Assembly (NCBI RefSeq): GCF_046119375.1
Contig: NW_027362772.1
Location: forward strand, 267,716,001-267,780,000
Length of the DNA stretch: 64,000 bases
Source: Phyllobates terribilis
Taxonomy: Eukaryota
Direction of reading: 5' to 3'
The stretch's first letter is position 1; each line of letters begins with the position of its first letter. Positions 12,821-54,740 of the stretch are shown here, in pieces. The position numbers were made by a program, and so were the translations under genes. The notes under the pieces are model-generated. The model ran no database searches. It was not told the DNA's origin and was given only the letters and a program-made list of their open reading frames with translations.

Positions 12821-15800
12821 TTACTCTCCCCAGGATGACACAGGGGTAGAAAAGTCGTTTCGGATCCATGATTTGTTCATCTTTATGAACGTGAGTCTGT
12901 CTACATTATCAGTGGAGAGCCGCGTGCGCTTATCTGTCAGCACACCACCAGCAGCGCTGAACACACGTTCAGACAGAACGCTGGCTGCGGGGCATGACAA
13001 GATCTCCAAGGCGTAAGTGGCTAGCTCCGGCCATTTATCCAGATTGGAAGCCCAAAAAGAGCAAGGGTCCAGTGACACAGTCGTGGCTTCAATGTTTACT
13101 TGGAGATACTCATGTACCATCGTCTCTAGGCGTTGACTATGTGTCAGACTTCTTGTCTCCTGTGGCCTTGCAAAGGATGGGCTAAAAAAGTGGTGAAATG
13201 ATTCCGCAAAATTGATGTTACCACCAGATACTGTGGTTCTGTTACGGTTTGAGTGCTGAACACTTGACGGTCCCACGGTTGGCAAGTTGGAACTGTGAGA
13301 TTCACTACGTGCACCACTGGTATTTTGCGGAAAAGCACATGTAAGATTCTGCAACAGTCTCTGCTGATACTCCTGCATGCGTGCATCCCTTTCTATGGCA
13401 GGAATAATTTCTGCAAATTTACTTTTGTACCGGGGATCTAACAGTGTGGCAACCCAGTAGTCAGGATTATTTCTAATTCTCACAATTCGAGGGTCATGTT
13501 GCAGGTAGTGCAGCAAGAAGGCACTCATGTGTGTTGCGCATCCAGGAGCACCAAGTCCCTGTTGTGTTGGTGGCAAGGTAACAATCATGCTTCCTTCCTC
13601 TGTCCTCTCCCCCCAACCTCGCACAACAGAAATGTGATCAAGGTCTCCCTCATCTGATGAGTCTTCCATCAGTTCGTCCTCCACTTCTTCCTGGGCTCCT
13701 GCACCTTCCTCACTAGTTTGGCTGCTACCATGCGCCCTGGTAAAACCATCTCCCCCACCCTCACATGCCTGCCGCCTTGGTGCTGCCGACCGTCTGGACC
13801 TTGCAGATGTTAGCCCTTCCGCATACAACTCCTCCTCCTCTACTTCCTCCACCTCCTCTTGTGCCACCACCTGACTCCGAATTCTGTTTAACATGTGCTC
13901 CAGCATGTAAATCACCGGAATAGTCATGCTGATAATGGCATCGTCAGCACTAAACATCTTCGTCGCCATTTCAAAACTGTGCAGAAGGGTGCATAGGTCC
14001 CTGATCTGAGACCACTCCTCCAGCGTGATTTGCCCCACCTCTGAATCTCGTTGGCCCAGGCTATACGTCAGATCGTATTGCACCAGGGCTTGTCGGTGCT
14101 GCCACAGTCGCTGCAACATGTGCAGAGTTGAATTCCACCGGGTAGGTACATCGCATTTTAGCCGGTGAAGTGGCAGGCCCAACGACTTATGTAGAGAAGT
14201 AAGTCGCTGAGCTGCGGGATGCGAACGGCGGAAGTGAGCACACAGCGACCGTGCCCTCTTCAGAAGGCCATCTAGTCTGGGATAGTGGGCTAAAAATTGC
14301 TGGACAACCAGGTTCAACACGTGAGCCATACAAGGCAAGTGTGTGACATTGCCCCGGCGAAGGGCCGCACCCAGGTTTGCAGCATTGTCGCACACGGCCT
14401 TCCCTGGTTGCAGGTCCAGTGGAGACAACCATTCATGAAATTGGTTCTCCAGAGCTGACCACAACTCCTCAGCTGTGTGACTCACATTTCCCAGACATTT
14501 CAATGTAAAAACCGCCTGATGACGTTGAGCCCTACTGCCAGCATAGTAAGGAGGTGTGCAGGATCCCTTCTGCGCAGTTAGTTAGCTTGTGGCATGACCA
14601 GACAGGCTTTGGGTGCAGGTGGAAGACCGAGAGGAGGTTGAGGAGGCAGAAGCAGTGGAGGAACTTTGACATAAAGAGGATTGACGCACAACTCGTGGGG
14701 ACGGCAAGACTTGGACAGCAGCCCCTTGTCCTGCTGTCACCATAGTTACCCAGTGCCCAGTCAGCGACATGTAACGCCCCTGTCCATGCCTACTCGTCCA
14801 AGTGTCTGTGGTGAAATGCACCCTGTCACACACAGAGTTTCTCAAAGAAGCGGTGATGTTGTGTGCGACATGCTTGTGGAGCGCAGGCACACCTTTCTTT
14901 GAGAAGTAGTGCCGACTGGGCATCTGGTACTGGGGCACTGCGACGGACATAAGGTCTCGAAAATCCTCTGTGTCCACCAGGCGGAAAGGCAGCATTTCTG
15001 TAGCCAAGAGCTTGCAGATGGTGAAATTCAACCTCTTAGCTTTCTCATGGCTAGGAGGAAATGGTCTTTTACTTGTCCACATCTGAGGGACCGAGGGCTG
15101 GCTATTGTGCTTAGACGGGGTTGATAAGGGTGTCCCCGGCAAACTGCCGGTCTGTGAGGAAGATGCAGGCGGACATGTTAGGTTGCCTTGATCCAAAGGT
15201 GGTGCTATCGATGTCGGACAGCGCTCAACACCAGCTGCTGTTACCACCTCCAAAGAAAATGATGACCTGCCAATCACGCTGGCTGTTGCGGGTAAAGAGG
15301 TGGCAGGTCTGCGCCCCAAAACAGGTGTGACTGCTGTCCCCCCAGTCACAGAGGATGAAGAGGCCGCGGATGCACAAGATATGGCAGACGGTGGTTGGCC
15401 CGGCCGGCTAGGCCGCATTGTAGCACACTGAGCTTCCCACTGCAACTTATGCTTCATGTCCATGTGCCGGTTCATGCATGAAGTACTCAAACTATGTATT
15501 TTTTGGCCTCCACTTAGCTTTTGCTGACAAATGTTACAGATAACACGAGTTGGGTCATCTTTATCGATCTGAAAAAATGCCCAGGCTATGCAAGGCTTAG
15601 CACCCATGCGACCTGAAGAGTCACCACGACTTGTGGTGAGAGGCAGAGTTGTGTTTGAGGATGCAGTTGTTGACGTGCTTCCAGTACTACGTCTCTGTCC
15701 AGGAAGGCGCAACCTGACCTCGTCGTCACTAGCATCTTCCTCCACCTCCTCTGCTGACCTCATCTCTTGGCTGACTGTGGGTTGACAGTAAGTGGGATCT

Positions 15801-16522
15801 CCAACCTCATCATCATCACCCTGTGTGTTATCACACCCGTCGTCCTCAGAGCCAACCTGTTCCTGCCCTGACAAAAAACTAATGTTGTCGCTCCAATCAG
15901 GTATTTGAGTCTTATCATCGTCTTCCTCATTGTCTCCACCAACAGGAGTTACAGTTTGGGAATGAGGGTCTACATTATGGTCAGAACCTTCTGCGTCTGG
16001 TCCTGGATCCGACTCATAAAGATTCTGGGCATCAGTGCAGATCATTTCCTCGTCTGGATTCACAGAAGCGCTGGAGTCGACCTCTGATTCCCAGGCTATA
16101 GTATGAGTAAACAGCTCTGCAGACTCAACCATCTGTTCTACCTCATACTCAGACGGGCAGCTGGAGATTTGGGAGCTGTGAGGAAGCAAGTGCGATTTGG
16201 GTGACACCTTTGATGACTGGAGTATTTGTGATGTTGAAGTTGATGTGGAGGAGAGCCCACTTAAAGGAGCACTTGATATCCGTTGAAGCACCTGCTGTTT
16301 TTGTGCCTCATCTGGAATTTGTAGCGATTGGCGTGGCCGTAAGAAAGGGATCTTATCACATTGTCCGCTAAAAGAAGTAGACATTTTAGTTTGGCTGGAA
16401 GATGGTCTTTCTTCTGCAGATGTTACTGTTGCTTTAACACCTACCCCACGGACACAACCTTTTTTCCCCTTCCCAACACGCCTATTCCCCTTTCCACCAG
16501 CAGCAGGCCTTTTTCCACTCAT
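12821..16522 (-). pseudogene. hAT transposase of A1, 1233 codons with one in-frame stop (14582-14584)
   Basis: BED finger (WAFF..CNIC..MNRHMDMKH), TTDTW, CDNAANL, CMAHVLNL, TRWNST, C-terminal CPAASVLSERVFS. ORFs 14582-16522 and 12821-14503 are in the same frame. Confidence 0.93.
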
Positions 16523-22005: not shown

Positions 22006-25000
22006 ATGGGCAAGGCGCGTGGCAAGGGACGAGGAAGTGGACGTTCTGGTGATGGTTCGTGCAGAGGACGGGGCCGTGGCCAAGGTGAAAATGTGCCACA
22101 ACCAACAGCCACATCTTCTCGCTCCCACTTCTTGACCGAATTACTAGGGAAGCACAGAACTACACCAGTATTGAGAATTGATCAGTGTGAACAGGTTATT
22201 AATTGGATAGCAGACAATACTTCCAGTTACCTGGGCACCACCACCTCCGGTCTGTCTTCCACACGGTCAACTCTTAGTAGCCGTGAGTCTCGACGGCATA
22301 CTCCTCCTCACCCTGATGCTCCTTCCTCCCACCATGCCGAGTGTCGTCACACAGCAAGTGATCCCACGCTTGGACACTCTGAAGAGCTGTTCACTGGTCC
22401 ATTTCCATATTTGGGCCCCTCGCCTGATACGCTTGAAGTGGTGGAAGAGGAGATCCCATGTTGCGATGCCCAAATATTTGAACAGCCACGGCCACAGGAA
22501 GTCGACGTTGGCAATCTGTCACAAGAGGTGGACGATGACGAGACACAATTGCCAGGAAGTGAGGAGGAGGATCGTGGTGCGCAAGTGGAAGAGGAGGAGG
22601 TGGTGGATGATCTAGTAACTGACCCAACGTGGAAGGAGGACATGCAGAGTGAGGCCAGTAGCACACAGGGGGGGGAGGCAGAGTACCCCAACAGGCAGGA
22701 AGAAGCAGTGTGGTGGCCGCAGACAGAAAGCAGGCAACCGTTCCCCGTAACACCAACACGAGGGACGTTGCCAGTACAAGCGGTAGGTCTTCCAGAGTCT
22801 GGAATTTTTTTAAAGACTCTGCTGATAACCCCAAAAAGGCCATATGTTCCACCTGCCATGCCAGCATCAGCAAGGGTGACAAAACTACCAGCCTGACCAC
22901 CACCAGCATGATCAGGCACATGGCAGCAAAGCACCCGACTTTGTGGGGCAAAATCCAGGGTCCACGACCAGTGTCAGCGGGTGTCACCACTGCTTCTTCC
23001 ACTGTTGTGCGTGCAATAGAACCCCCTGTTGTGTGTGCAAGGCAAACCCCTGTCCATACTGAATGCAAAGATGCCCCCTCCTCTCAGTCTTCACTTGTTA
23101 TGGCAGTTTCTCAAGAAACAGCATCAACGTCCACGTCCCACCGCAGCGTTCAATTGTCCATATCCCAGACCTTTGAACGAAAGCGGAAATTCGCAGCTAA
23201 CGCCCCACAGGCCACAGTCCTAAATTCACACATTTCACGACTGCTTGCATTGGAAATGCTGCCTTTTAGGCTGGTGGAGACGGAATCCTTCCGCAATCTT
23301 ATGGCGGTGGCCGTCCCTCGGTACTCGGTCCCCAGCCAACACTATTTTGCCCGGTATGCCATCCCCGCACTACACAAGCACGTGTCCCAAAGCATCTGCC
23401 GTGCCCTCAACAACGCAGTTACTGGGAGAGTCCACCTGACAACGGACACGTGGACAAGTGCTTGTGGCCAGGGACGGTACATCTCTCTGACGGCACACTG
23501 GGTAAACATAGTGGAAGCCGGGACCCAGTCGGATCTTGGGATGGAACACATCCTCCCCACACCGAGGATTGCGGGCCCTATGTCATTCAGAGTTTCCCCC
23601 ACAGTGTACAGCTCCTGCGCATCCTCCTCCTCCTCCTCATGTTCAGCCTCCATCTCAGATATCACCACATCAGTTACAAGCTGGAAGCATTGCAGTACTG
23701 CCTCCGCCAAGCGGCAACAGGCTGTGCTGAAACTCATAAGCTTAGGTGATAAACCTCACACTGCTTGTGAGTTGTGGACAGCTGTGAAAGAGCAGGCAGA
23801 TCTGTGGCTGAGACCGCTGAACCTACATCCCAGCATGGTCATGTGTGACAATGGCCGGAACCTGGTGGCGGCTCTGAGGCGAGGTGAGATCACACACGTA
23901 CCATGCCTGGCTCATGTGCTTAACCTCGTGGTTCAGCGGTTTCTTAAATCGTACCCCGAGTTGCCAGATCTGCTCGTGAAAGTACGCCGCCTGTCAGCTC
24001 ATTTTCGCAAGTCGGCTACAGCTTCCGCCGCCCTTGCTGTGCTGCAGCAGCGTTTGCAGCTTCCGGCACACCGACTGGTGTGTGATGTCCCCACACGTTG
24101 GAACTCTACCCTCCACATGTTGCAAAGGATTTGTGAGCAGAAGAGAGCAGTTGTGGAGTACCAGCTGCAACAAGGCCGTCGATATTCAGGTCAGACTCCA
24201 CACATAAGACCTCAGGAGTGGACCTGGATGTCTGACATATGTACCATCCTGACAAACTTTGAGGAGGCCACCCAGATGGTGAGTGGCGATGACACCATCA
24301 TTAGCGTCAGCATCCCACTTGTCTGTCTTTTGCAACGCTCTCTGCAGAGAATTAAAGAGGAGGCATTGCAGCCAGAGTATGATGAGATGGATCAAGAAGA
24401 CGTAGCGGGCGATTACACACAGCCCAGCCTCATCTCATCCCAACGTGCATTGGGGACAATGAGGGAGAGGAGGAGGAGGAGGAAGAACAGGAGCTGCTAT
24501 CATGCGTTGTAGACGGTAGTACCTGTACAAGTGTCATACCGTTGGTTCAGCGTGGGTGGCCTGAGGACAGGGGGGAGGAGGAAGAGGAGGAGGAGGAGAG
24601 CATGGTCAGTCGTCATCTTGGTGAGGACACGGAAATATTTTTCCCGTTACCAGTCTGGCACGCATGGCTGACTTTATGTTACGCTGCCTTAAGCGTGACC
24701 CTCGCGTTGTCAAAATGTTGTGTGACAGTCATTACTGGTTGGTGACACTTGTAGACCCCCGCTGCAAGGAGAACTTTCACTCTCTTATTCCTGAGGTGGA
24801 GAGGTCTACAAAAATGGGGCAATACCAGAAGGCCCTTGCTGCAGAACTCTTAAAAAAATTCCCATCTGAACACCCTAGCGGCAGAGGTCACAGTTCGTTG
24901 CCCAACCAAGGAGTACAGGCGAGAGAGATGCAACTCCAATCCAGCAGAGGCAGGGGAACATTGTCAACGTTCTGGGGCAGTTTTCTGACACCCGCCCAGC

Positions 25001-29195: not shown

Positions 29196-30277
29196 GATGC
29201 GGCAAGGATCACTTATGATTGGCACACTTTTAGACAGTGACCTGGGAGTCAGAGATGCCTCCAGGGGTCTTCCCCATGCTGTTCCCATGTCTTTTCAGCA
29301 CTTTATGCATGTGTCACACAGCACATGGCCAGATATGGTTGTAAAATGTTAAAATGACATTTCCCGATGAATGAATTTGTCATAGTTGAAAGCAATACAA
29401 AAGTGCAAAAACGCATAAAAAATGCTACTTGTGAACATAGCCGAAGGTGTGGAGGAGTATTTTTGTTTTTGGTCATTTATTTTAACTTATACACAAGTCT
29501 TTTCCCTGGAAAGGATGTTCCTTAACATATTTCACAGGAAAAAATTTCACTTTCGTTTTATTGTGAGCCTGTAAAAGTGGCTTAATACCTCTGACCACGT
29601 TGTTGACAGCAGTGACCTGGGGGTCAGAAATGCTTCCTGGGGTGATCCCCATGCTGTCCCCATGTCATTTGAGCACTGTGACTATCGTTTTGGGCACTTG
29701 TTAGGCTTTTAAAAGACTGCCGGGGGTGCCACCGTAAAAATGCTAGAGTCTCCCAGAGACTAACATTGGGCTCGTTGCTCGGGTCGAGCACCCGAGTACC
29801 ACGGCGAGATCGGCCCGAGCTTCGAGCACCCGAGCATTTTAGTGCTCGCTCAACACTAATAATAACATGATTTTAAAGCAAGCAGACAAAATGGAGTTGC
29901 TCTAGCATGAGTATCAATATGTCTTTTACACTTGGATAGCATGTATATTAATATGTCCTTTACATTCCCCCCTAAAAATTATGTTATTATCAACAATAGA
30001 GGTGCTTTCCCAGGGTCATGCTTTGAGCCTGAGGGACATTGGTCTTCACTCAATTAGTGCCCTTGTTACCAATCGAGGCTGTCGCGGCATGTCCATCCCC
30101 CCTTGTTTGTTGACATAATCATAAAGCTCAGATCTTCAGACGTGAGGTTGGTTGGGGCAAGCGGGTAAAGGTCATCATTCCCTTGTCATCCAGGTCCTCA
30201 ATGCTGGTTACATCTGGGAGGTCCGTGTATAGTAGCACTGGATGTCGGTTAACAGCGTCCTCCTTGCTCTCTGATGA

Positions 30278-31173
30278 CTAGCAGGTTTTCCTCATGCAAA
30301 ATGGGATACAATAAAAGACTAGTTTTAGTAAAACATATATTAACAAGACGCAAGCAGCAATATGCAACACTCCTTGTAATATTCCAGCAATCCATCCACC
30401 AATCCCTTTAAATCAATTAGCAGGATTTAAAAAGGAAAATGTATCAGACCACCAACTGTCTTTCGTCAATTCATTATGTTTGTTATACTCTTCCCTGAGT
30501 TTCCTAATGTCTTCGATTTTAGTCTTTAACCGTCGGGGTCAATATAGTGACAACAGGCTCAGCCTATAACCTGACACATCCCTCCTTGAGCTGCTGTCAA
30601 ATAGTCCAGCACTAAAGTATGTTGATTAGCCACTATAATAAGTTGATTCTGCACTGCAACAGTAGTATTAATTACTTCCAAAATATTCCAAATCTGGTCA
30701 TCTAAGTAATCAATGACTTCCACTAATTTGTCCCACATTTGTGTTACCATAGGGTAAAGGAAGACAGTACTGGCTATCTTATTGGGTATACTCATTTGTA
30801 CTAAATGAGGTCTTCCTGATGGGCATGGGGTGTTGTCCTTAGCACGTTTATAGATGGTATGAAGAGGGATGGATCTCATATCTACTTTTCTATGGGGAAT
30901 AAGTTAAGTGGCTGGAGTTAGCCGGGCCAACGTACAAGTCCCCCCTACTCCGACTGGGGGCCATTTATACACATTATTCCCACAGACCCAATATGTGGCT
31001 GATGGGAGGTCCCATAAAACAGAGTGCTGTAATACTAATTTATGTACCAAATCGATAAAAACGGTGTTATTTGATAACATACACCATGAAGGCATTTGTC
31101 CCAGGGGGCTACAATATCCAACATCCGGGTTGTCACATGTTGGATCACTAGGCTTATATTCAGAAAATTCATG
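30278..31173 (-). pseudogene. env: ERV env remnants (SU C-terminal part and TM)
   Basis: YWVCG..KWPP..GGTCTLARL; ISD-like NQHTLVLDYLTAAQGGMCQVIG; membrane-proximal and TM DSWWSDTFSFLNPAN*FKGIGGWIAGILQGVLHIAACVLLIYVLLKLVFYCIPFC. Contains stops and frameshifts. Confidence 0.85.
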
Positions 31174-33058
31174 TTTTACTGCTGTTGGGGTTGTCAGGAG
31201 CACTTGATATGGTCCGTCATACAGTGGTTCTAGTCCGTGTTTCCAAACATGCTTCTTCACATACACATAATCTCCAGGCTTGAGGGTATGACAACCCTCT
31301 GCATCAGCTGGATCTGGAATAGAAGGTGATACTAACTCATGGGTGTTAGTTAAGGCTTTGGCAAGCTGAATCACATATTGCACAACATAATCTGTTTCTT
31401 CTGATAATTGTTGTGGGGTAAATCTAGCTATAGCTGGTTGTGACCCAAATAGTATCTCATAGGGTGACGGTTTATGTTTCCCTATGGGGGTGGTGCGTAT
31501 GTGATATAGTGCAATGGGAAGGAGCTCAGGCCACTGGGCCGTAGTCTCCTGCATCATTTTGGTTAATTGCCTTTTCAGTGTGCCATTCAATCTCTCCACC
31601 TTGACGGTGGATGGTAAGGAGTATGTAACGTCACTGTTGATCCGATCATGGTAAGTATTTCTTGATATACACATGATGAAAAGGCTTCTTGGCGGTAGTC
31701 TCACAGGAGAACCTGCAGTCGTGACAAAGCCTCTCCTTGCCCAGATCTCCCCAAAATCATGTGCAATCCCGAAGACGTATCTCGAGTTAGTAAATATATT
31801 CACACGTCTTCCTTCGGCCTGTTTACAAGCAGCAATCAGGGCTTTGAGCTCTGCTTCCTGTGCTGACATACTGGGGGGTAAGGCTACAGCCTCCACCAAT
31901 GTATCTTCAGTTGTGACAGCATATCCAGTATCCAGTATGAAACCTGCCAGAGGTGTCAACATATCTGGATCCATCCGTATATAACGTAAGTTCTGGGTCA
32001 TCCAAGGGTACTTCCCCCACTAGAACAAGTGGAGTTGACTCCGCATTAATTTGTTCCAGACAATTATGCGGTGGAGCCTCTTTCCCCTCTCCTTCAGGTG
32101 CTGGGAGCAGGGTGGCTGGGTTGATGGTGGTGCACCGGTGTAATTTCACATTTTCTGGCAAAATCAACATACACTGCAGCCCCAGGTGTCTATGTGTAGA
32201 CAGATGTTTAGGTTGCTGTGTGGCGTGAACCGCTCGTAGACAGCTGGGGGAGGCCCTGGCTTCCGGGTCCAGATGCACTGAGTAATACCCGACTGGGCGC
32301 TGCTTTGTACAGTGTCTCTGCGTGAGTACTCCGGCTGCATGCCCTCCTGTCTCAGAGACATACAAATGGAAAGGTTGAGCATAGTCTGGATTTCCAAGGG
32401 CAGGGGCTGTCATTATCCTTGACTTTAGTTGTTCAAAGGCTTGTTGCAGCAGTTCTTGGTGGTCCTTGTTGTTTACATCAGCCAGAGTGTCTTCTTTTAA
32501 TGCATCATATAAGGGCTGCATCAGACGTGAGGCGTCTGGGATCCATTCTCTGCAATATGTACATAGTCCGAGGAACCTTTGCAGCTCTATGGGATCTTTT
32601 GGGAATGGTAGTAGGTAGATGTCAGTCTTCCTTTCTTCTGTGAGATGTCTGGCACCCTGAGTAAGGCAGTGGCCTAAGAAGACCACTTGACCAAGGCAAA
32701 ACTGAAGTTTTGAGGCTGAGACTCGACAATTCAGTTTTGCTAGATGCATGAGGATGCTAACACTGGCCCTGATGGACATTTGCTCCGTGGGGGCACACAA
32801 AAGAAGATCATCCACGTATTGTAAAAGTACTACCTCAGAGTTGTCCAGCTGCCACAGCAGCAGACAGCTAGACATGATCTTTGCAAACTGATTAGGGCTA
32901 TTCTGCGCACCCTGCGGCATCACCGTCCAAGTCATTTGCCTGCCCTGATATGTAAATGCAAACAGAAACTGACAGTCTTTGTGTAGTGGAATGCTAATAA
33001 AAAAAAAAAAAACGTTTGCTAAATCAATTACTGTAAACCAGACAACGTGTATGTGCAT
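31174..33058 (-). pseudogene. pol: ERV pol remnant (RT, RNase H, integrase C-terminal part) with deletions
   Basis: FTVIDLAN, MPQGAQNSP, LLQYVDDLLL, LYTDGSR, SAQEAEL, VERLNGTLK, GPYQVLLTTPTAVK. Frameshift at a short tandem duplication near 31925. Confidence 0.92.
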
Positions 33059-35069: not shown

Positions 35070-35596
35070 TGTTAAGGGAGAGCAATGGCCCTTCACGGTT
35101 GACCAAGTGAGTGTCAAATTATTATGTTGATTGCGCAATCCAACAGAGAACCAGACGGAGACAGTGCTTGCTCTGTATGGGAGGATTCAAAAGAATCTCT
35201 GATCCCGTTTATTTTGCTTAGCATTTTATATTGTTTTGAGCTTATTAATGTCCAATCATCTACACCCATACTACAGGCTTGAACCAATGTTAGTACAATT
35301 ATTACGGAAATACACATATGGTCATATTATCGTTAGTTCGGTGCATGGTGGAAATGTACAAGGTCAATCCTGGCCTAGACTAGTTAGATAACAGGAGCGG
35401 GGTGTCTGACCAAATGTTCTTGAGATAAAAAGTTAGTGTGGGAAAGTTCCATGGGAAGAGAAAGAAAGAATGTATGTTATGCAAGGAGTGATAATAACAT
35501 GATTTTAAAGCAAGCAGACAAAATGGAGTTGCTCTAGCATGAGTATCAATATGTCTTTTACACTTGGATAGCATGAATATTAATATGCCCTTTACA
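35070..35596 (-). repeat. ERV 5' LTR (527 bp, uninterrupted)
   Basis: Minus strand TGTAAAGG...CCTTAACA; contains the empty hAT-B target site. Confidence 0.93.
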
Positions 35597-37777: not shown

Positions 37778-37935
37778 NNNNNNNNNNNNNNNNNNNNNNN
37801 NNNNNNNNNNNNNNNNNNNNNNNNNNNNNNNNNNNNNNNNNNNNNNNNNNNNNNNNNNNNNNNNNNNNNNNNNNNNNNNNNNNNNNNNNNNNNNNNNNNN
37901 NNNNNNNNNNNNNNNNNNNNNNNNNNNNNNNNNNN
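37778..37935. other. Assembly gap (158 N)
   Basis: N run; it hides the outer ~24 bp of the Gypsy 3' LTR and its TSD. Confidence 1.
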
Positions 37936-38760
37936 TTAATAATCACCTAGGCAGGTTATCGATGCAATTAGTTTTATTCCTTCCGACCACGGTGAACAGC
38001 AATTCCAGGTAAATGTCCGACAGGCAATTCTTTTAGTCCTCGAGTTTCCAACCTTGGGATCAGTAGTTACACTGGCTTTATATCAGGCCATACTCACTGT
38101 CTCCCAACTTGTGGTTAGCCCACAGATTTCGTATCTCCAGCCAGTAAAGTCTGTAGCCACAGTCCATGATCCTCTAGACAGCAGATAAAACGATGAAAGC
38201 ACAGGTATCCAGTAGCAGCAGTCCTTTTAAGAAAGTGTAAATCCAAACGACATAATCCATAATGGTAACATGTTTATCCATTCATCCTTCCAAGTCCACG
38301 GTCTCCATCCTCTTCGTTCAATCCTTCCACACAACTCTCTAAAACATGTCTCCACTTTGTTCCACTGGGATCAGTCCTTTCCCAGGTCAGAAATGATCAC
38401 ACCCTCCCCCTTAAACATTCACTGTTCGCTAAAACAATTAAGAATATTCTAGAAGCCTTCATCTGAGACTGCCTTTAAGACCCCCTGTGGTGACGGCTCC
38501 ACTGTGTCTCAATCGACACTCACCTAATGAGATTATTGGCTGTTGAAACATTGGACTCCTGAGATAAAGATGAGATTAGTGGAATGCTGGACATTTTACA
38601 AGTGAATCTTACATACTGACAAGTAAGCAGAACTATATAAAAGATAACAAGTAAATCACTAATAAAACACAATAATAATATTGACAAAAATGGTGGTCTG
38701 TTGCTGGAAAAGTATCATAGTCTTTAGTAAGTGGGCAGCTCCTCACATACCTCCCCCACT

Positions 38761-39103
38761 TTTTCAGCACGGACACGAATGTAAGAGGTCTCGCCTTTAT
38801 GAGAATGAAACTTTGTATCATCCAGTTTCCTCAAAGCATATTCCATGTCGTCCTTGTGAATATACTCCACAGTCCCCATTCCACCCTGGTATACGTCAGT
38901 GTAATTGACATCTCTAGCTTCTCTCATATGGTCTTTCAGATCCTGCCAACTTCAGAAGCCCTAAGACAAGGATTCTGTATTTAGTTCGCTGGATCAGGGG
39001 TCTGTCCTTTGCGCGGGGTCCTCCATATCCCCCCCTGATCCCCAGTTTGTCCTGGGAAACTCCACACATGCCCATGAGAACCAAACTTGTATCCATTGCG
39101 ACC
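38761..39103 (-). pseudogene. SRSF9: Captured processed fragment of SR splicing factor mRNA (end of RRM1, linker, RRM2), SRSF9-like
   Basis: [85 protein letters not shown], with frameshifts. [12 protein letters not shown] and GETSYIRV favour SRSF9 over SRSF1. Confidence 0.88.
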
Positions 39104-40798
39104 AACCCCAGAGTGCTGACACCCAGTTAGGGGGATGGTCACTTGGCGGCCTGGTAAAGGGAGCTCTGGGTGAACAGTATCTGGGCTAACCAGGGTAAGG
39201 GTAGATCCAGTGTCCCAAAGTCCCTGGGCCTCCTCCCTGATGTAGTTTACCTCCCCTAGATTACATTCCTTCATTGTGATAGTCATTGCATTTTGTGCAT
39301 CACTCACAGCTGACATGTTGATATTGCTCCTTTCCCTATTGGCTGATGCAGTGTGAACCGGTCCTTGGCTTCCAGTTACGAGATTGGCCCAGTGGCACAC
39401 CAGTCCTGCTCCCAGATTGTTTCCCAGCAACACCTCTACTGGTAGGTGCCGCACTACTCCTACATCCACCATTCCATGACTGTGACCCCAGTCTAAATGT
39501 AGTCGGGCCCCCCGAATGTTCAAAAATTCTCCTCCGGCTACATTGACAGCTGCTGGGGACAATACATTGGTCTGGTACTAAATGGTCTTTTATCAATGTG
39601 ACTGAGGCTCCGGAGTCATGGATCCCCACAGCCTGCACACCCTCTACCCAGACAGGCTGCAGATGCTGGTTAATAGACTCTGAGGTGTCCCATCTAGTCC
39701 GGGACACTTCTCCTTGTACAACATATGCCTCTTCTTCTTCCGGTCGGGGTAGTGGGATCCTCTTTCCCTCAGCATTCCAGCCCCATTGCAGCACAGTGTT
39801 CACAGGTCGGGGACGCGGATGATGTGGACTAGAACGTTCCCGGCATTCTCTGGCAAAGTGTCCCATGCGTCCACAGTTATGTCAGTTAAGCCTTCCTCGC
39901 TCCAACATGGGCCATACTTGGGGGCTTGGGAAATCTCCCCCTCTTTGTGAAGTCCGAACTACCTGCCGTTCCTCCTCTGGCCAGTCCATTGGTTTCAATG
40001 GCCTCCCTGTAAGCTCCTGTTTCCAACTCACTGGGCCTGTACTTTCACGTTGCCCTGGTCGATTAGCAGACCAATCATCAGCCAATCTTGCAGCCTCATC
40101 CAGGCTGCTTTGTTTTCTATCTGCCACCCATTCTCTTAAATCACCTGGGAGTTTGGACATGAATTGTTCCAGCACAATTATATCTATTACATGTTCTGCT
40201 TCCTGAGCCCTCAGTCCTTCTATTCGCCGAGTGCATGCCATATGTAGTGTGTTGGCAAACTCCCGATGTGTGTGTGCGGCGGGCTTGTCAGTCTCCCGAA
40301 ACTTCCTCCGGTAGGTTTCCGGCATGACAGCATACCTCTCTAGTAATGTGCTGTGAATGGAAGAGTATCATCACTGATCCCGACAAGACAAGTTATTAAA
40401 AGCTTCTCTTGCTTTTCCGGTCAGGCCAACGCTCAAAAATCTGGTCCAGTCACTGACTGACACCTCATGCAGCAGACAGAGGTTCTCAAATAACCGGAGA
40501 TGTTCATCAATATCCGAGGTGTCCTCATTGAACTGTGGTATATCCCGGTACCTTAAAGATGCGGGCCCCTCTCTCCTGTTATCCACTGTCCTCTGCAATG
40601 AGGTGGGTTGGGGTACTGCTACATGCACACCCAGATATTTGCTTAGCACTGCCGCCTGCTCTATCTCTATCTGGTCCCAATCGTCCAAGCGTTGCATTAA
40701 GGTCACCCAATTGCCCTCGAGCAACCACTGTAGTTCTCTCTCATAGTAAGGGCTCTCAGCTCCTCCTTCTTGAGCCTCTTGTAGATGGAGTCTGCCAT
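39104..40798 (-). pseudogene. gag: Gypsy gag-pro: CA/SCAN-like domain, broken zinc knuckle, two aspartic-protease motifs
   Basis: ATG at 40798; IPQFNEDTSDIDEHLRLFE..LTGKAREAF; ETYRRKF..LEQFMSKLPGDLREWV..SLDEAARLAD; *HNCGRMGHFAREC; HDSGAS (39609-39617) with LLGNN; WDTGST (39206-39214). Confidence 0.85.
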
Positions 40799-41720
40799 CT
40801 CTTCTGCCAAGTCACCTCTCAGTAACTTTCCCTGGTATGCTGTCCAGAGATAGGTGATCCCACCGCTGCCATCACTTGTAAAGATGTGCGGTTGTGGATT
40901 TTAATAATAACCTAGGCAGGTTATCGATGCAATTAGTTTTATTCCTTCCAACCACGGTGAACAGCAATTCCAGGTAAATGTCCAACAGGCAATTCTCTAA
41001 GTCCTCGAGTTTCCAACCTTGGATCAGTAGTTACACTGGCTTTGTATAAGGCCATACTCACTGTCTCCCAACATTTGGTTAACCCACAGATTTCATATCT
41101 CCAGCCCGTATAGTCTGTAGCCACAGTCCATGATCCTCTAGACGGCAGATAAAACGATGAAAGCACAAATATCCAGTGGCAGCAGTCCTTTTAAGAAAGT
41201 GTAAATCCAAACGACATAATCCATAATGGTAACATGTTTATCCATTCATTCTTCCAAGTTCACGGTCTCCATCCTCTTCCTTCAATCCTTCCACACAACT
41301 CTCTAAAACATGTATCCACTTTGCTCCACTGGGATCAGTCCCCTCCCAGGTCAGAAGTGTTCACACCCTCCCCATTAAACATTCACTGTTCGCTAAAACA
41401 ATTAAGAATATTCTAGAAGTCTTCATCTGAGACTGCCTCTAAGACCCCCTGTGGTGACGGCTCCACTGTGTCTCAATCGACACTCACCTAATGAGATTAT
41501 CGGCTGTTGAAACATTGGACTCCTGAGATAAAGATGAGATTAGTGGAATGCTGGACATTTTACAAGTGAATCTTACATACTGACAAGTAAGCAGAACTAT
41601 ATAAAAGATAACAAGTAAATCACTAATAAAACACAATAATAATATTGACAAAAATGGTCGTCCGTTGCTGGAAAAGTATCATAGTCTTTAGTAAGTGGGC
41701 AGCTCCTCACATATATATAT

Positions 41721-47830: not shown

Positions 47831-49450
47831 AGACTTCCGCAGTGAACCTGTAGATTGAAAAGAACTCTGATGTTCAAACTGAGCTTCACTGAAAACCACT
47901 GATCTGTGATGACCTCCGGACTGACCATCACTGTACAAGGTGTCATAATCCGGTAGATGTCACAGCTGCTGGGACATTATAGGGAAGCCCGCAACGCAGA
48001 AAGACATTAGCCTACTCTCCAATGCTTCAGCAGTGTGCGAAACGGTGCCTGACAAATTTTTTTATGTGAACCACAAAACAAAATTTCAAAATGTTCAAAT
48101 TCACTTGAGACTACAAATTTCAGTAAATTCAACTCAAACTTGATCCATCTGCTCATCTCTAGTAGCTTGTCATCCCATGAAATTAAATCTAATGTTAGAG
48201 AAGTGAATCAGTTTAAGTAAAATCAAATTAACGCAAATATTACAAAAAAAAACATTCTAATTTGCCCTTATTCACAGCCTTGTTCTGCTCTGGTGTTTTT
48301 CTTCTTCAGTCTGGTGCAATCTCTTCTACTGTCTGGTGTGGTGTCTTAGGCTCTTGAAATTTTCTATGCTTGCTAGCCTATCATAATCATTATATCCCAT
48401 AAGGTCTGATATGTTGTGGGGTCAAGATAATGCGGGGCCTTGTCATTAGCTGAAGGAAGACAACTCATTGGACTTGGAGGAGGAATACGTGGCGAAACAA
48501 ATGAAGGTTAGGTGAAAATATCTTTTTTATTTTGTTTTGTTTGTTTATTCTGCTCTTAGATCTGGAGAATACTCAAAGCACAATAAAGTAGTAATAAACT
48601 CAATGTAAATCAAAAGTCTAGGCCTAAGTCAAGCAAATCTTCCAAATTCTAATATCTGCGCATTCGCTCATCCTTACCTAATAAGTAGAGATGAGCGTTG
48701 TTCTACTCGAACTGTTCGCCAATCTCAAATTCGAGCTGTTTTGGGCGGTGTTCGAGCCGTTCGGCGAACACGAACAATTTGAGAAAAATTCGGCTGTTCG
48801 AGGTTATGTTCGATAACTGTTCGTGCACCAAAATCATAACTGGATTTTTTCTCAGTAATGATGAAAATTAATGTTAATACGCAGTTTGAGTGTACAGCGG
48901 GGCATGTGTCATTGGCAGTGTATGTCACATGTCCTTGCCCTATAAGACCAAGCCATTTTCCCCGTCGCCACCATTTTCTCACTGCTGCAGCTGCGTGTTA
49001 GACGGCACCGCTGTTGCTGTGTGCGCTATACCTCGTTAATTTCAAGCCAATTTTCGCACAAAGCTACAGATAGCTTGGGAGTAGGAAATAGTTGTGATTG
49101 CAGTCCTTTTAAGGACTAGGTTACAGCATTTCCTACGACTTTTATCAGGCAGGTCTGTGCTCTTAAATAGATAGATTGTGGGAGTAAAGACTAATTGCAA
49201 TTGGAGTCCTTTTTAGGACTAGGTTACATCAGTTCCTATCAGTTTTTGCCAGGCAGGTCTGTGCCAGTGCTGTGCAAGTTTTTGTCACAGCATTTGGCTG
49301 AATCTAGCAAAGCTAATCCTTTTTGGCCTATTGCAGAGTGTGTTAGTCAGTGGAGTAGCCTATCTGTGTTGCAAGATATACCACCTGTGTATAGAATACC
49401 AATTTTTTTACTGCACCTAGTGAAGTAAAATCTTTTGGGCATAGCATCAT

Positions 49451-50922
49451 TCTATTAGTCCATCTATACTGACCTCCATCAGGTTGCAAATTGAAAATAA
49501 TTTTTTTTCTGCATCTAGCTCTGAAAAAATATTGGGCTTCTAGCTGTGTGTGGGACTTGTTCTATTAATCCATCTATACAGACCTCCATCAGGTTGCAAA
49601 CTGAATATATTTTCTTCTGCATCTACCTCTGAAAAAATATTGGGCTTCTAGCTGTGTGTGGGACTTGTTCTATTAATCCATCTATACAGACCTCCATCAG
49701 GTTGCAAACTGAATATATTTTTTTCTGCATCTACCTCTGAAAAAATATTGGGCTTCTAGCTGTGTGTGGGACTTGTTCTATTAATCCATCTATACAGACC
49801 TCCATCAGGTTGCAAACTGAATATATTTTTTTCTGCATCTACCTCTGAAAAAATATTGGGCTTCTAGCTGTGTGTGGGACTTGTTCTATTAATCCATCTA
49901 TACAGACCTCCATCAGGTTGCAAACTGAATATATTTTTTTCTGCATCTACCTCTGAAAAAATATTGGGCTTCTAGCTGTGTGTGGGACTTGTTGTATTAG
50001 TCCATCTATACTGACCTTCATCAGGTTGCAAACTGAATATATTTTTTTCTGCATCTACCTCTGAAAAAATATTGGGCTTCTAGCTGTGTGTGGGACTTGT
50101 TGCATTAGTCCATCTATACTGACCTCCATCAGGTTGCAAACTGAATACATTTTTTTCTGCGTCTACCTCTGAAAAAATATTGGGCTTCTAGCTGTGTGTG
50201 GGACTTGTTCTATTAATCCATCTATACAGACCTCCATCAGGTTGCAAACTGAATATATTTTTTTCTGCATCTACCTCTGAAAAAATATTGGGCTTCTAGC
50301 TGTGTGTGGGACTTGTTCTATTAATCCATCTATACAGACCTCCATCAGGTTGCAAACTGAATATATTTTTTTCTGCATCTACCTCTGAAAAAATATTGGG
50401 CTTCTAGCTGTGTGTGGGACTTGTTCTATTAATCCATCTATACAGACCTCCATCAGGTTGCAAACTGAATATATTTTTTTCTGCATCTACCTCTGAAAAA
50501 ATATTGGGCTTCTAGCTGTGTGTGGGACTTGTTCTATTAATCCATCTATACAGACCTCCATCAGGTTGCAAACTGAATATATTTTTTTCTGCATCTACCT
50601 CTGAAAAAATATTGGGCTTCTAGCAGTGTGTGGGACTTGTTGTATTAGTCCAACTATACTGACCTCCATCAGGTTGCAAACTGAATATATTTTTTTCTGC
50701 ATCTACCTCCGAAAAAATATTGGGCTTCTAGCTGTGTGTGGGACTTGTTGTATTAGTCCATCTATACTGACCTCCATCAGGTTGCAAACTGAATATATTT
50801 TTTTCTGCATCTACCTCTGAAAAAATATTGGGCTTCTAGCTGTGTGTGGGACTTGTTGTATTAGTCCATCTATACAGACCTCCATCAGGTTGCAAATTGA
50901 ATATAATTTTTTTCTGCATCTA
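49451..50922 (+). repeat. 108-bp tandem array inside A2 (~13.6 units)
   Basis: Period 108 (e.g. TCTATACAGA at 49681, 49789 and 50221). Confidence 0.93.
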
Positions 50923-51038
50923 ACCCAGCCAATAGTTTTGGCCTAATACCACAGTTTGGCCACTCAGCTCTGCTCGGTTCCCATCCATTGTTTTTTTGTG
51001 CAAACAACTCCAGAGTTGTGAATTAGTTAACCACCAAA

Positions 51039-54000
51039 ATGAGTGGAAAAAGGCCTGCTGCTGGTGGAAAGGGGACTAGGTGTGTTGGGAAGGGGAAAAA
51101 AGGTTGTGTCCGTGGGGTAGGTGTTAAAGCAACAGTAACATCTGCAGAAGAAAGACCATCTTCCAGCCAAACTAAAATGTCTACTTCTTTTAGCGGACAA
51201 TGTGATAAGATCCCTTTCTTACGGCCACGCCAATCGCTACAAATTCCAGATGAGGCACAAAAACAGCAGGTGCTTCAACGGATATCAAGTGCTCCTTTAA
51301 GTGGGCTCTCCTCCACATCAACTTCAACATCACAAATACTCCAGTCCTCAAAGTTGTCACCCCAATCGCACTTGCTTCCTCACAGCTCCCAAATCTCCAG
51401 CTGCCCGTCTGAGTATGAGGTAGAACAGATGGTTGAGTCTGCAGAGCTGTTTACTCATACTATAGCTTGGGAATCAGAGGTCGACTCCAGCGCTTCTGTG
51501 AATCCAGATGAGGAAATGATCTGCACTGATGCCCAGAATCTTTATGAGTCGGATCCAGGACCAGACGCAGAAGGTTCTGACCATAATGTAGACCCTCATT
51601 CCCAAACTGTAACTCCTGTTGGTGGAGACAATGAGGAAGACGATGATAAGACTCAAATACCTGATTGGAGCGACAACTTTAGTTTTTTGTCAGGGCAGGA
51701 ACAGGTTGGCTCTGAGGACGACGGGTGTGATAACGCACAGGGTGATGATGATGAGGTTGGAGATCCCACTTACTGTCAACCCACAGTCAGCCAAGAGATG
51801 AGGTCAGCAGAGGAGGTGGAGGAAGATGCTAGTGACGACGAGGTCAGGTTGCGCCTTCCTGGACAGAGACGTAGTACTGGAAGCACGTCAACAACTGCAT
51901 CCTCAAACACAACTCTGCCTCTCACCACAAGTCATGGTGGCTCTTCAGGTCGCATGGGTGCTAAGCCTTGCATAGCCTGGGCATTTTTTCAGATCGATAA
52001 AGATGACCCAACTCGTGTTATCTGTAACATTTGTCAGCAAAAGCTAAGTAGAGGCCAAAAAATACATAGTTTGAGTACTTCATGCATGAACCGGCACATG
52101 GACATGAAGCATAAGTTGCAGTGGGAAGCTCAGTGTGCTACAATGCGGCCTAGCCGGCCGGGCCAACCGCCGTCTGCCATATCTTGTGCATCCGCGGCCT
52201 CTTCATCCTCTGTGACTGGGGGGACAGCAGTCACACCTGTTTTGGGGCGCAGACCTGCCACCTCTTTACCCGCAACAGCCAGCGTGATTGGCAGGTCATC
52301 ATTTTCTTTGGAGGTGGTAACACCAGCTGGTGTTGAGCGCTGTCCGACATCGATAGCACCACCTTTGGATCAAGGCAACCTAACATGTCCGCCTACATCT
52401 TCCTCACAGACCGGCAGTTTGCCGGGGACACCCTTATCAACCCCGTCTAAGCACAATAGCCAGCCCTCGGTCCCTCAGATGTGGACAAGTAAAAGACCAT
52501 TTCCTCCTAGCCATGAGAAAGCTAAGAGGTTGAATTTCACCATCTGCAAGCTCTTGGCTACAGAAATGCTGCCTTTCCGCCTGGTGGACACAGAGGATTT
52601 TCGAGACCTTATGTCCGTCGCAGTGCCCCAGTACCAGATGCCCAGTCGGCACTACTTCTCAAAGAAAGGTGTGCCTGCGCTCCACCAGCATGTCGCACAC
52701 AACATCACCGCTTCTTTGAGAAACTCTGTGTGTGACAGGGTGCATTTCACCACAGACACTTGGACGAGTAGGCATGGACAGGGGCGTTACATGTCGCTGA
52801 CTGGGCACTGGGTAACTATGGTGACAGCAGGACAAGGGGCTGCTGTCCAAGTCTTGCCGTCAACACGAGTTGTGCGTCAATCCTCTTTATGTCAAAGTTC
52901 CTCCACTGCTTCTGCCTCCTCAACCTCCTCTCGGTCTTCCACCTGCACCCAAAGCCTGTCTGGTCATGCCACAAGCTTTCTAACTGCGCAGAAGGGATCC
53001 TGCACACCTCCTTACTATGCTGGCAGTAGGGCTCAACGTCATCAGGCGGTTTTTACATTGAAATGTCTGGGAAATGTGAGTCACACAGCTGAGGAGTTGT
53101 GGTCAGCTTTGGAGAACCAATTTCATGAATGGTTGTCTCCACTGGACCTGAAACCAGGGAAGGCCGTGCGCGACAATGCTGCAAACCTGGGTGCGGCCCT
53201 TCGCCGGGGCAATGTCACACACGTGCCTTGTATGGCTCACGTGTTGAACCTGGTTGTCCAGCAATTTTTAGCCCACTATCCCAGACTAGATGGCCTTCTG
53301 AAGATGGCACGGTCGCTGTGTGCTCACTTCCGCCGTTCGCATCCCGCAGCTCAGCGACTTACATCTCTACAGAAGTCTTTGGGCCTGCCACTTCACCGGC
53401 TAAAATGCGATGTGCCTACCCGGTGGAATTCAACTCTGCACATGTTGCAGCGACTGTGGCAGCACCGACAAGCCCTGGTGTAATACGTTCTGACGTATAG
53501 CCTGGGCCAACGAGATCCAGAGGTGGGGCAAATCACGCTGGAGGAGTGGTCTCAGATCAGGGACCTATGCACCCTTCTGCACAGTTTTGAAATGGCGACG
53601 AAGATGTGTAGTGCTGACGATGCCATTATCAGCATGACTATTCCGGTGATTTACATGCTGGAGCACATGTTAAACAGAATTCGGAGTCAGGTGGTGGCAC
53701 AAGAGGAGGTGGAGGAAGTAGAGGAGGAGGAGTTGTATGCGGAAGGGCTAACATCTGCAAGGTCCAGACGGTCGGCAGCACCAAGGCGGCAGGCATGTGA
53801 GGGTGGGGGAGATGGTTTTACCAGGGCGCATGGTAGCAGCCAAACTAGTGAGGAAGGTGCAGGAGCCCAGGAAGAAGTGGAGGACGAACTGATGGAAGAC
53901 TCATCAGATGAGGGAGACCTTGATCACATTTCTGTTGTGCGAGGTTGGGGGGAGAGGACAGAGGAAGGAAGCATGATTGTTACCTCGCCACCAACACAAC

Positions 54001-54740
54001 AGGGACTTGGTGCTCCTGGATGCGCAACACACATGAGTGCCTTCTTGCTGCACTACCTGCAACATGACCCTCGAATTGTGAGAATTAGAAATAATCCTGA
54101 CTACTGGGTTGCCACACTGTTAGATCCCCGGTACAAAAGTAAATTTGCAGAAATTATTCCTGCCATAGAAAGGGATGCACGCATGCAGGAGTATCAGCAG
54201 AGACTGTTGCAGAATCTTACATGTGCTTTTCCACAAAATACCAGTGGTGCACGTAGTGAATCTCACAGTTCCAACTTGCCAACCGTGGGACCGTCAAGTG
54301 TTCAGCACTCAAACCGTAACAGAACCACAGTATCTGCTGGTAACATCAATTTTGCGGAATCATTTCACAACTTTTTTAGCCCATCCTTTGCAAGGCCACA
54401 GGAGACAAGAAGTCTGACACATAGTCAACGCCTAGAGACGATGGTACAGGAGTATCTCCAAGTAAACATTGAAGCCACGACTGTGTCACTGGACCCTTGC
54501 TCTTTTTGGGCTTCCAATCTGGATAAATGGCCGGAGCTAGCCACTTACGCCTTGGAGATCTTGTCATGCCCCGCAGCCAGCGTTCTGTCTGAACGTGTGT
54601 TCAGCGCTGCTGGTGGTGTGCTGACAGATAAGCGCACGCGGCTCTCCACTGATAATGTAGACAGACTCACATTCATAAAGATGAACAAATCATGGATGCG
54701 AAACGACTTTTCTACCCCTGTGTCATTCTGGGGAGAGTAA
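51039..54740 (+). pseudogene. hAT transposase of A2, 1233 codons with one in-frame stop (53481-53483)
   Basis: Same motifs as A1. ORFs 51039-53483 and 53523-54740 are in frame; TAA stands where A1 has CAA. Confidence 0.93.

Follow-up and report, generated by a model that had tools for sequence, protein, structure and literature searches.

Host mRNA capture by LTR retrotransposons is already documented in animals. LTR-mediated retrocopies have been described in fly, mosquito, zebrafish, chicken and mammals, and typically the internal reading frames of the element are replaced, the host sequence is truncated at its 3' end, and there is neither a poly(A) nor a duplication (Tan et al. 2016, Genome Res 26:1663, PMC5131818). 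Older examples include maize Bs1, yeast Ty1 chimeras and HERV-K/FAM8A1. Acutely transforming retroviruses, in the account of Swain and Coffin (1992) as cited in PMC5131818, capture host genes by read-through and splicing together with a template switch at the 3' side. According to Emerson and Thomas (2011, cited in PMC3424704), the vertebrate SCAN domain derives from the Gmr1-like Ty3/gypsy elements. SRSF9, finally, has been reported as one of the leading parents of amphibian retrocopies, which has been attributed to non-LTR activity (bioRxiv 10.64898/2026.06.26.734816).

The locus described here lies in the window, by which we mean the whole 64,000-nucleotide stretch of Phyllobates terribilis DNA that was analysed. 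It is probable that the locus is a dead, non-autonomous copy of a Gmr1-like Ty3/gypsy element, in which a fragment of a processed host SRSF9 mRNA has taken the place of all that once followed the protease, and that the replacement took place by recombination at the RNA level.

Anatomy of the element

The element is an LTR retrotransposon of about 3.8 kb, it is dead, and all its features lie on the minus strand. The two LTRs are 95.9% identical over 814 nt, a divergence of 4.1% with one indel, and they enclose only about 2.1 kb. The 5' LTR (40877-41711, about 835 nt), found by alignment to the 3' LTR, starts with TG at 41711. Its end at 40877 is inferred from a CA with a candidate primer-binding site behind it, and its final 24 nt have no readable partner, since the 3' copy enters a run of N. 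The candidate primer-binding site, read from the sequence, is an 18-nt stretch starting with TGG (40854-40871), 5 nt past the inferred LTR end; there are no tRNA genes within the window. On the other side of the interior, a 16-nt purine-rich run read directly as the polypurine tract (38750-38765) adjoins the 3' LTR and stops 2 nt short of it. The 3' LTR is readable at 37936-38747, and its end is expected by spacing at about 37912. This position is inside the sole run of N in the window (37778-37935, 158 nt), which masks roughly the final 24 nt of the LTR and the adjoining flank, and the target-site duplication of the whole element is therefore unreadable.

Between the LTRs there is a SCAN-type gag, a protease, a truncated second protease, about 345 nt of SRSF9-like sequence and the purine tract. 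The pol domains looked for in the 2.1-kb interior (reverse transcriptase, RNase H and integrase) were not found, and neither flank of the SRSF9-like fragment holds any pol sequence. The preliminary description had pictured an SRSF9-like sequence standing in place of pol between similar LTRs, with the primer-binding site and the polypurine tract retained, and this picture holds, with the primer-binding site as a candidate.

The gag and the first protease, which is of the Asp-Ser-Gly type, form a broken gene at 39410-40798. The gag matches Pfam SCAN (E 9e-16) in the region 39882-40325, and homology to anuran Gmr1-like gag-protease sequences spans 40607-39410. The comparable part carries at least two frameshifts and at least one in-frame stop, and at least one extra frame change lies between the first ATG of gag and that part.

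Only the N-terminal half is present of the second protease (39122-39295). It sits inside an open frame at 38981-39562 and has its own Asp-Thr-Gly motif, with the codons starting at 39214, so that the truncated second protease of the preliminary description is real. Alignment with the proteases of six anuran relatives shows that it ends 29 residues past the catalytic Asp (window 39122 corresponds to Asp+29 of the partners). Identities are 16/30 to the protease of an LTR unit of Discoglossus pictus, which is described below, and 8/27 to the first protease of the window element. By these comparisons the second protease and the protease of the element itself are of different lineages, which makes the present copy a three-part mosaic. 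Word-based protein searches with the 193-residue frame of the second protease and with a 147-residue gag frame gave no matches.

The SRSF9-like fragment

On the minus strand, 38760-38951 translates into an open stretch of 64 residues with the SWQDLKD motif at its start. This piece matches Pfam RRM_1 (E 1.2e-6), and its match among PDB sequences is the SRSF9-type RRM2 1wg4 (E 1.5e-28, 101.7 bits), with the RRM2 of SRSF1 below it (E about 5e-26, 93.8 bits). A phmmer search of 1.84 billion proteins gave top matches 76-78% identical to the piece (E 5e-24), and those of them that carry a name are all SRSF9, from Chinchilla, Ursus, Alligator and Chelydra. Over the 64 residues there are 45-49 identities to SRSF9 proteins as compared to 42 to SRSF1 proteins, and the RRM2 is closer to SRSF9 than to SRSF1, by a modest margin. 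The best match is in any case an SR protein.

A frameshift-aware alignment extends the similarity upstream, and pairs residues 125-244 of alligator SRSF9 with window 39103-38757 at 74/114 identities and with three frameshifts. The aligned stretch covers the end of RRM1, the linker and RRM2, and it stops before the RS domain. The fragment has three to four frameshifts over about 345 nt and no stop on the aligned path. Besides this comparison, shuffle z-scores of 3.9-6.7 underlie the assignment of the RRM1 end and the linker; no significant match among PDB sequences was obtained when the sequence upstream of RRM2 was searched by itself in three-frame pieces. A weak colinear extension of the homology into exon 1 (window 39176-39129) was rejected, as it did not reach significance (z 1.4-2.0) and clashes with the protease homology in another frame. 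Of RRM1 only the last part is present, and a complete RRM1, the RS domain and an open frame are all missing, so the SRSF9-like sequence is a gene fragment and not a gene. We place it at 38760-39116, close to the 38748-39110 given in the preliminary description. The content proposed there, that is the RRM1 end, the linker and an RRM2 of the SWQDLKD type, is borne out by the PDB and phmmer matches and by the alligator alignment, as are the sense orientation, the position between the truncated second protease and the polypurine tract, and the exclusion of the RS domain.

The preliminary description also held that the fragment is continuous where the parental gene would have an intron, at SH(E/K)|GET. 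Alligator SRSF9 does have a phase-0 intron there, after its residue 231 (residue 52 in the window RRM2 piece), and the window DNA is contiguous across the site. A second alligator intron position, 174/175, is crossed by the fragment as well. In the alligator, residues 125-244 are spread over three exons with introns of 1.6 and 1.1 kb, as compared to 347 contiguous bases in the window. This comparison was made exon by exon, and at the DNA level only the middle exon could be aligned, at 71%. About 60 of the 150 best phmmer matches stop aligning at residue 52-53 of the RRM2 piece, which is what can be expected of reading frames called on unspliced genomic contigs. Judged against the alligator gene, the fragment is intron-free.

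Compared as DNA, alligator and frog SRSF9 sequences are 85% identical to each other, and the fragment shows 71-72% identity to them. In RRM2 the fragment has 11 private changes at positions that are otherwise invariant. Such decay, set against the LTR divergence of about 4%, suggests indirectly that the lesions of the fragment predate this insertion, as had been proposed; a divergent SRSF9 in the host could account for part of the divergence. No second copy of the chimera was found within the window, and exact-protein look-ups with three reading frames as well as word-based protein searches were empty.

Relatives and the origin of the chimera

The closest counterpart was found in Discoglossus pictus (GCA_027410445.1), where an LTR unit of 2.82 kb is present at three loci (L002, L003 and L004) that are 98.2-98.6% identical. 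Its order is LTR, SCAN gag, CCHC, truncated protease, full intron-free SRSF9, RNase H remnant and LTR. A 670-residue Gag-SRSF9 reading frame runs through the unit and is open at two of the three loci, and at two loci the LTRs are 99-100% identical. In the annotation the proteins are simply named SRSF9-like, and our literature searches gave no description of them as element-borne. The unit shows that chimeras with captured host genes do amplify.

The Discoglossus unit belongs to the same broad element clade as the window copy, with a SCAN gag, a CCHC and a gag homology of E 4e-43 between the window gag and the Gag-SRSF9 frame, and it is likewise non-autonomous. In both, SRSF9 lies in sense directly after a protease that is cut at the same residue; the break common to the two chimeras is at Asp+29 to 31, within about two residues. 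The differences are also clear. In Discoglossus SRSF9 is fused in frame to gag with its coding sequence complete, RS domain included, and starts at about residue 1, in exon 1, whereas the window copy has a broken piece from about residue 64/68 to 191 of a 221-residue SRSF9. Ahead of the purine tract the Discoglossus unit retains a remnant of RNase H, which the window copy does not have, and it occurs at several loci, while the window copy is single in the data searched. No transposons are common to 63 kb of Discoglossus sequence and the window. Long proteins with a C-terminal RRM2 (P0020, P0025 and others) were considered as further relatives and set aside, as there is no gag in them.

Both ends of the fragment are truncated, and on one side it runs directly into the purine tract. 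Here the 3' junction falls at about 38757-38765 and overlaps this tract, the final alignable SRSF9 codons sharing its first bases. On the 5' side the homology to proteases stops at 39122 and clear homology to SRSF9 begins at 39116/39103, with the junction between these positions. The most likely origin of the chimera is recombination at the RNA level while the element was being reverse-transcribed. The reverse transcriptase would have started on the RNA of the element and copied U3 and the purine tract, and would then have changed template to a spliced, co-packaged SRSF9 mRNA, at a point just 5' of the codons for the RS domain. Copying of this mRNA would have gone back nearly as far as the exon 2 start, where a second switch, back onto retrotransposon RNA, would have landed inside the protease gene. 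The window copy probably underwent more than one round of copying with enzymes from autonomous relatives, and this copying in trans would have been followed by insertion at the present locus and by decay.

The start of SRSF9 exon 2 maps to about window 39128, and the 5' junction is within about four codons of it, which means that this junction may have been made by splicing instead of by a template switch. An element inserted in sense in intron 1 of SRSF9 would then have been transcribed into the gene, a cryptic donor in the protease would have been joined to the acceptor of exon 2, the introns further downstream would have been spliced out as usual, and only the 3' junction would be due to a template switch, onto a normal RNA of the element. 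The protease of the Discoglossus chimera, broken at the same residue, is what a fixed donor predicts. On the other hand, L005, the one autonomous relative examined, has no donor-like GT near Asp+29 to 31, its best site agreeing with the consensus at 4/9 positions. The host part in Discoglossus begins in exon 1, which has no acceptor, and the first four window codons past the supposed exon start align unconvincingly. We regard such read-through transduction as unlikely, and favour two template switches between RNA molecules.

The shared breakpoint can also be explained if both chimeras descend from a single old capture, a module of truncated protease and SRSF9 that was kept because the Gag-SR fusion helps the element, and that moved between backbones, with the window copy decayed and the Discoglossus copies working. 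The placement of SRSF9 in both, in sense and directly after the truncated protease, agrees with this, and so do the second protease of the window copy, which is foreign to its backbone, and the Gag-SRSF9 frame that has stayed open at most of the Discoglossus loci. Several details of the two chimeras speak against it. The SRSF9 part starts at about residue 1 in one and at about residues 64-68 in the other, and the 3' junction in Discoglossus comes after the stop codon and is followed by the RNase H remnant, whereas in the window it falls within the coding sequence at the purine tract. Of five discriminating RRM2 positions, the window fragment shares three with amniote host genes and one with the Discoglossus element copies. 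The gag proteins are only 31-35% identical, and as DNA the fragment is no closer to the Discoglossus copies (71-72% identity) than to the host exon of the alligator (71%). We regard a common origin of the two as very unlikely.

Copies made by LINEs keep the 3' end of the mRNA, whereas the fragment lacks both the RS domain and the UTR, has no poly(A) (the longest A-run is 5 nt) and is not bracketed by direct repeats of 7 nt or more, which makes a LINE-mediated origin unlikely. That an SRSF9 processed pseudogene was inserted by LINEs into a resident element, or that deletion or recombination at the DNA level brought an element and an older pseudogene together, would accord with the rank of SRSF9 among amphibian retrocopy parents and its attribution to non-LTR activity, and the duplication of the whole unit is masked by the N run, but the fragment has no pol on either side, and so replaces pol and does not interrupt it, and it lies within a few bases of the purine tract, and we find these routes highly improbable.

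Comparison with known systems

Few vertebrate capture cases have both LTRs, the purine tract and both junctions, and the window copy adds one, with a Gmr1-like carrier. Of wider bearing is a young, multi-copy LTR unit in Discoglossus with gag and a complete SRSF9 in a single open frame. If amphibian SRSF9 copies ride on LTR elements, and not on LINE machinery, then the counts of retrogenes are partly counts of a transposon family, and a splicing factor borne by a retrotransposon becomes a candidate accessory gene. A protease breakpoint common to two distant chimeras is moreover a concrete question that can be answered by sequence alone. A further reading is that the Gmr1-like elements of lower tetrapods carry a long-lived module of truncated protease and SRSF9, which passes between backbones and is kept for an action of the Gag-SR protein on the RNA of the element, for instance on its splicing, export or packaging. 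The window copy would then be a decayed and cut-down descendant and the Discoglossus unit a working one. We consider this quite doubtful; if true, it would also explain the rank of SRSF9 among the top amphibian retrocopy parents.

Like the Gmr1-like elements, the window copy has a gag whose C-terminal part matches Pfam SCAN and which is homologous to anuran SCAN-gag polyproteins, at an identity of only about 30% to every relative found. The assignment to this group rests on gag, and the pol order with the integrase upstream of the reverse transcriptase was seen only in a distant anuran relative that came up with the Discoglossus unit, P0172 of Bufo bufo (protease, integrase, reverse transcriptase, RNase H).

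As in the capture of host genes by acutely transforming retroviruses, a spliced host sequence lies in sense downstream of gag-protease, the replication genes are replaced, and copying would depend on helpers. Unlike these viruses, the carrier in the window is intracellular and has no env, and the captured piece of a splicing factor no longer codes.

The structure of the window copy fits LTR-mediated retroposition as described by Tan et al. (2016, PMC5131818). An intron-free piece of a host mRNA lies in sense between both LTRs and replaces the internal frames, it is truncated at the 3' end, and it has neither a poly(A) nor a duplication of its own. It differs from the retrocopies of Tan et al. 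in its Gmr1-like carrier with a SCAN-type gag, and it carries in addition a second protease segment, derived from another lineage and a sign of repeated recombination.

Structure of the element and neighbouring repeats

The element lies on the minus strand and is bounded by direct repeats at 37936-38749 and 40901-41713, which are 95.9% identical across 814 nt with one indel. Repeat alignment and sequence place its 5' LTR from 41711 (TG start) to 40877, where the end was set at a CA. A candidate primer-binding site, 18 nt long and beginning with TGG, follows 5 nt past this end; no tRNA gene was found in the window. On the same strand a purine-rich tract of 16 nt occupies 38750-38765. Two bases past it, at 38747, the 3' LTR begins, and it then enters the window's single N run. 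This run (37778-37935) hides where the 3' LTR ends, the flank next to it and, with them, the target-site duplication of the whole unit; about 130 nt of the run lie beyond the missing LTR end.

The interior between the LTRs is only about 2.1 kb long, and translations and Pfam searches of it gave no reverse transcriptase, RNase H or integrase. The gag starts at 40798, with a SCAN match in its C-terminal part (Pfam, E 9e-16), and is followed by a first protease of the Asp-Ser-Gly type. A spacer of about 110 nt without assignment separates this from a second protease segment, seen in translation as the N-terminal part only (Asp-Thr-Gly codon from 39214, minus strand), and the SR-protein sequence comes directly after it. 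In the part comparable with a relative, gag and first protease are broken by at least two frameshifts and at least one stop, and at least one additional frame change lies nearer the gag start. The window copy itself is dead.

Several other repeats were seen in the window. A gammaretrovirus-like pol remnant at 30904-33058 (minus strand) carries RVT_1, RNase H and an MLV-type integrase C-terminal domain in two overlapping frames, and is flanked by 106-nt direct repeats (29859-29964 and 35491-35596, 98% identical) which may be part of its LTRs. Three hAT-type copies, at 12821-16522 (minus), 22006-24512 (plus) and 51039-54740 (plus), have long reading frames with a BED zinc finger and a hAT dimerisation domain; two of the three are alike in layout, with 646/814-residue plus 560/405-residue frames, and suggest recent hAT activity. 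Directly upstream of one hAT copy is a tandem array (49388-50983) of about 15 copies of a 108-nt unit with 95-99% identity. A weak match to a Tc3-type transposase HTH at 11457-12056 (plus), whose E of 1.7e-4 misses the Pfam cut-off, probably marks a Tc1/mariner remnant.

The host-derived fragment and its junctions

The open stretch at 38760-38951 encodes 64 residues with the SWQDLKD motif at its start. In PDB it matches the SRSF9-type RRM2 1wg4 (E 1.5e-28) better than SRSF1 RRM2 (about 5e-26). Among 1.84 billion proteins searched the best matches reach 76-78% identity, and the named ones are SRSF9 of Chinchilla, Ursus, Alligator and Chelydra. Of its 64 residues the RRM2 piece has 45-49 in common with SRSF9 proteins, against 42 for SRSF1 proteins, and it is thus SRSF9-like by a modest margin. 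In P0005, a JGI/IMG protein of 333 residues, a proteasome-subunit domain precedes an RRM2 of SRSF9 type that has 76% identity to the window piece.

The sequence ahead of RRM2 has no intact reading frame, and single-frame pieces from there gave no matches in searches of their own. A frameshift-aware alignment, retained as counts and outer bounds only, set alligator SRSF9 residues 125-244 against window 39103-38757 with 74/114 identities and three frameshifts but without a stop; alignment to two other SRSF9 proteins gave four frameshifts. The fragment holds the RRM1 end, the linker and RRM2, and it stops 34 residues before the alligator C-terminus, which means that the RS domain is missing. An SRSF9-like piece without RS domain, as claimed in the preliminary description, is confirmed by the 1wg4 match and by this alignment, and a best match outside the SR proteins can be set aside, as the best named ones are SRSF9.

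To place the introns, annotated alligator SRSF9 was mapped exon by exon, via exact matches, onto its genomic locus, which adjoins a dynein light-chain gene. The exons span residues 118-174, about 175-231 and 232-278, and a GT immediately past codon 231 indicates a phase-0 intron. Position 231/232 corresponds to residues 52/53 of the window piece, between SH(E/K) and GET. About 60 of the best 150 matches are short proteins in which the match ends at residue 52-53, as expected where reading frames were predicted from genomic contigs without splicing. The window DNA is contiguous across both intron positions, 174/175 and 231/232, where the alligator introns measure 1.6 and 1.1 kb; at the DNA level only the middle alligator exon was matched (71%). 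The earlier claim that an intron at SH(E/K)/GET had been lost is thus borne out.

At the 3' junction the final alignable SRSF9 codons end at 38757-38763 and share the opening bases of the purine tract. Neither a 3' UTR nor an A-run of more than 5 was found, and the fragment is not bracketed by any direct repeat of at least 7 nt, so that it has no TSD and poly(A) of its own, which would have spoken against capture. On the other side, second-protease homology to six anuran relatives ends at 39122 and clear SRSF9 homology begins at 39116-39103. The start of the exon with the RRM1 end maps to about 39128, which puts the 5' junction at most about 4 codons from the exon boundary. A continuation of the SRSF9 homology into exon 1 was rejected: it is colinear, weak and non-significant (z 1.4-2.0), and clashes with protease homology in another frame.

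Gag-SRSF9 units in Discoglossus pictus

Among the results of the protein search, at least 11 'SRSF9-like' proteins belong to Discoglossus pictus; they are spread over six chromosome-scale records. At the three loci fetched, nearly the entire SRSF9-like protein is intron-free, and the coding stretch sits in a 2.82-kb unit between direct repeats of 226-236 nt (L003:5603-8421, L002:40920-43743 and L004:16194-19034, GCA_027410445.1). Identity between the repeats is 99-100% at two loci and 95% at the remaining one, and the unit is 98.2-98.6% identical among the three. One frame of 670 residues, open at two of the three loci, begins just past the 5' repeat, ends with the stop codon of SRSF9 and holds SCAN, a CCHC knuckle, a truncated protease and the complete SRSF9 with two RRMs. 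The stop codon is separated from the 3' repeat by a remnant that matches the final 24 residues of the RNase H region in Bufo polyproteins. The relatives of the frame are anuran gag-pol proteins in the order protease, integrase, RT, RNase H, as in Gmr1-like elements, the lineage in which the SCAN domain reportedly has its origin (PMC3424704). The window gag is homologous to this clade (E 4e-43).

Since SRSF9 starts at about residue 1 in the frog units but at about residues 64-68 in the window copy, the 3' junctions differ, and the window RRM2 has no excess of states shared with the frog copies, the sequences favour independent captures. Against this stands a common protease breakpoint: 29 to 31 residues past the catalytic Asp, alignability to the same relatives ends in both chimeras (window 39122; frame residues 451-453 of L003:5878-7887), although their gags are only 31-35% identical. 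A hotspot, a splice donor, a shared ancestral module and chance are candidate explanations.

SRSF9 is one of the top amphibian retrocopy parents listed in a 2026 preprint, which ascribes the retrocopies to non-LTR elements (bioRxiv 10.64898/2026.06.26.734816). The Discoglossus units suggest that some amphibian SRSF9 retrocopies may ride on an LTR element family; in the literature searched we found no description of an LTR element bearing SRSF9. Together, this frog family and the shared breakpoint raise the interest of the topic above that of a single locus. An 834-residue protein (P0183; 3968-nt ENA contig, cluster of 11 sequences) has a SCAN gag and protease-like region, then an RRM of hnRNP D / A-B type (PDB E 1.5e-39), and looks like another gag-RRM chimera; it came from a query containing RRMs, and we claim no enrichment.

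Copying history and origin of the chimera

The second protease has 8 of 27 residues in common with the first, as against 16 of 30 with a frog relative. It thus comes from another lineage, and the window copy is a three-part mosaic. The fragment DNA is 71-72% identical to alligator and frog SRSF9, used as references in place of the host species' own gene, and these two are 85% identical to each other. Its RRM2 has 11 private changes at otherwise invariant positions, and there are 3-4 frameshifts per about 345 nt, compared with one indel per 814 nt of LTR. Measured against these references, the decay of the fragment appears to far exceed what the 4.1% LTR divergence allows, which fits the suggestion that its lesions predate the insertion. 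The mosaic make-up and the excess decay are evidence for more than one copying cycle. The chimera may have been amplified and copied in trans.

The structure put forward in the preliminary description, with an LTR pair, a purine tract, no pol and an intron-free SRSF9 piece, is supported. As to how it arose, splicing of a read-through transcript could have made the 5' junction, the route known from classical capture by retroviruses; in the one relative with DNA examined, nothing like a splice donor was seen at the corresponding position. LTR-mediated retroposition is the most likely origin of the fragment. In this process reverse transcriptase leaves the element RNA for an mRNA packaged with it and later returns (Tan et al. 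2016, PMC5131818); here it would have switched onto a co-packaged SRSF9 mRNA. The fragment shares with the described cases that it is cut at both ends, that it takes the place of pol and does not interrupt it, that it abuts the purine tract, and that it lacks the marks of LINE-mediated retroposition. The find is an LTR-mediated capture of a processed host mRNA, of a kind already known.
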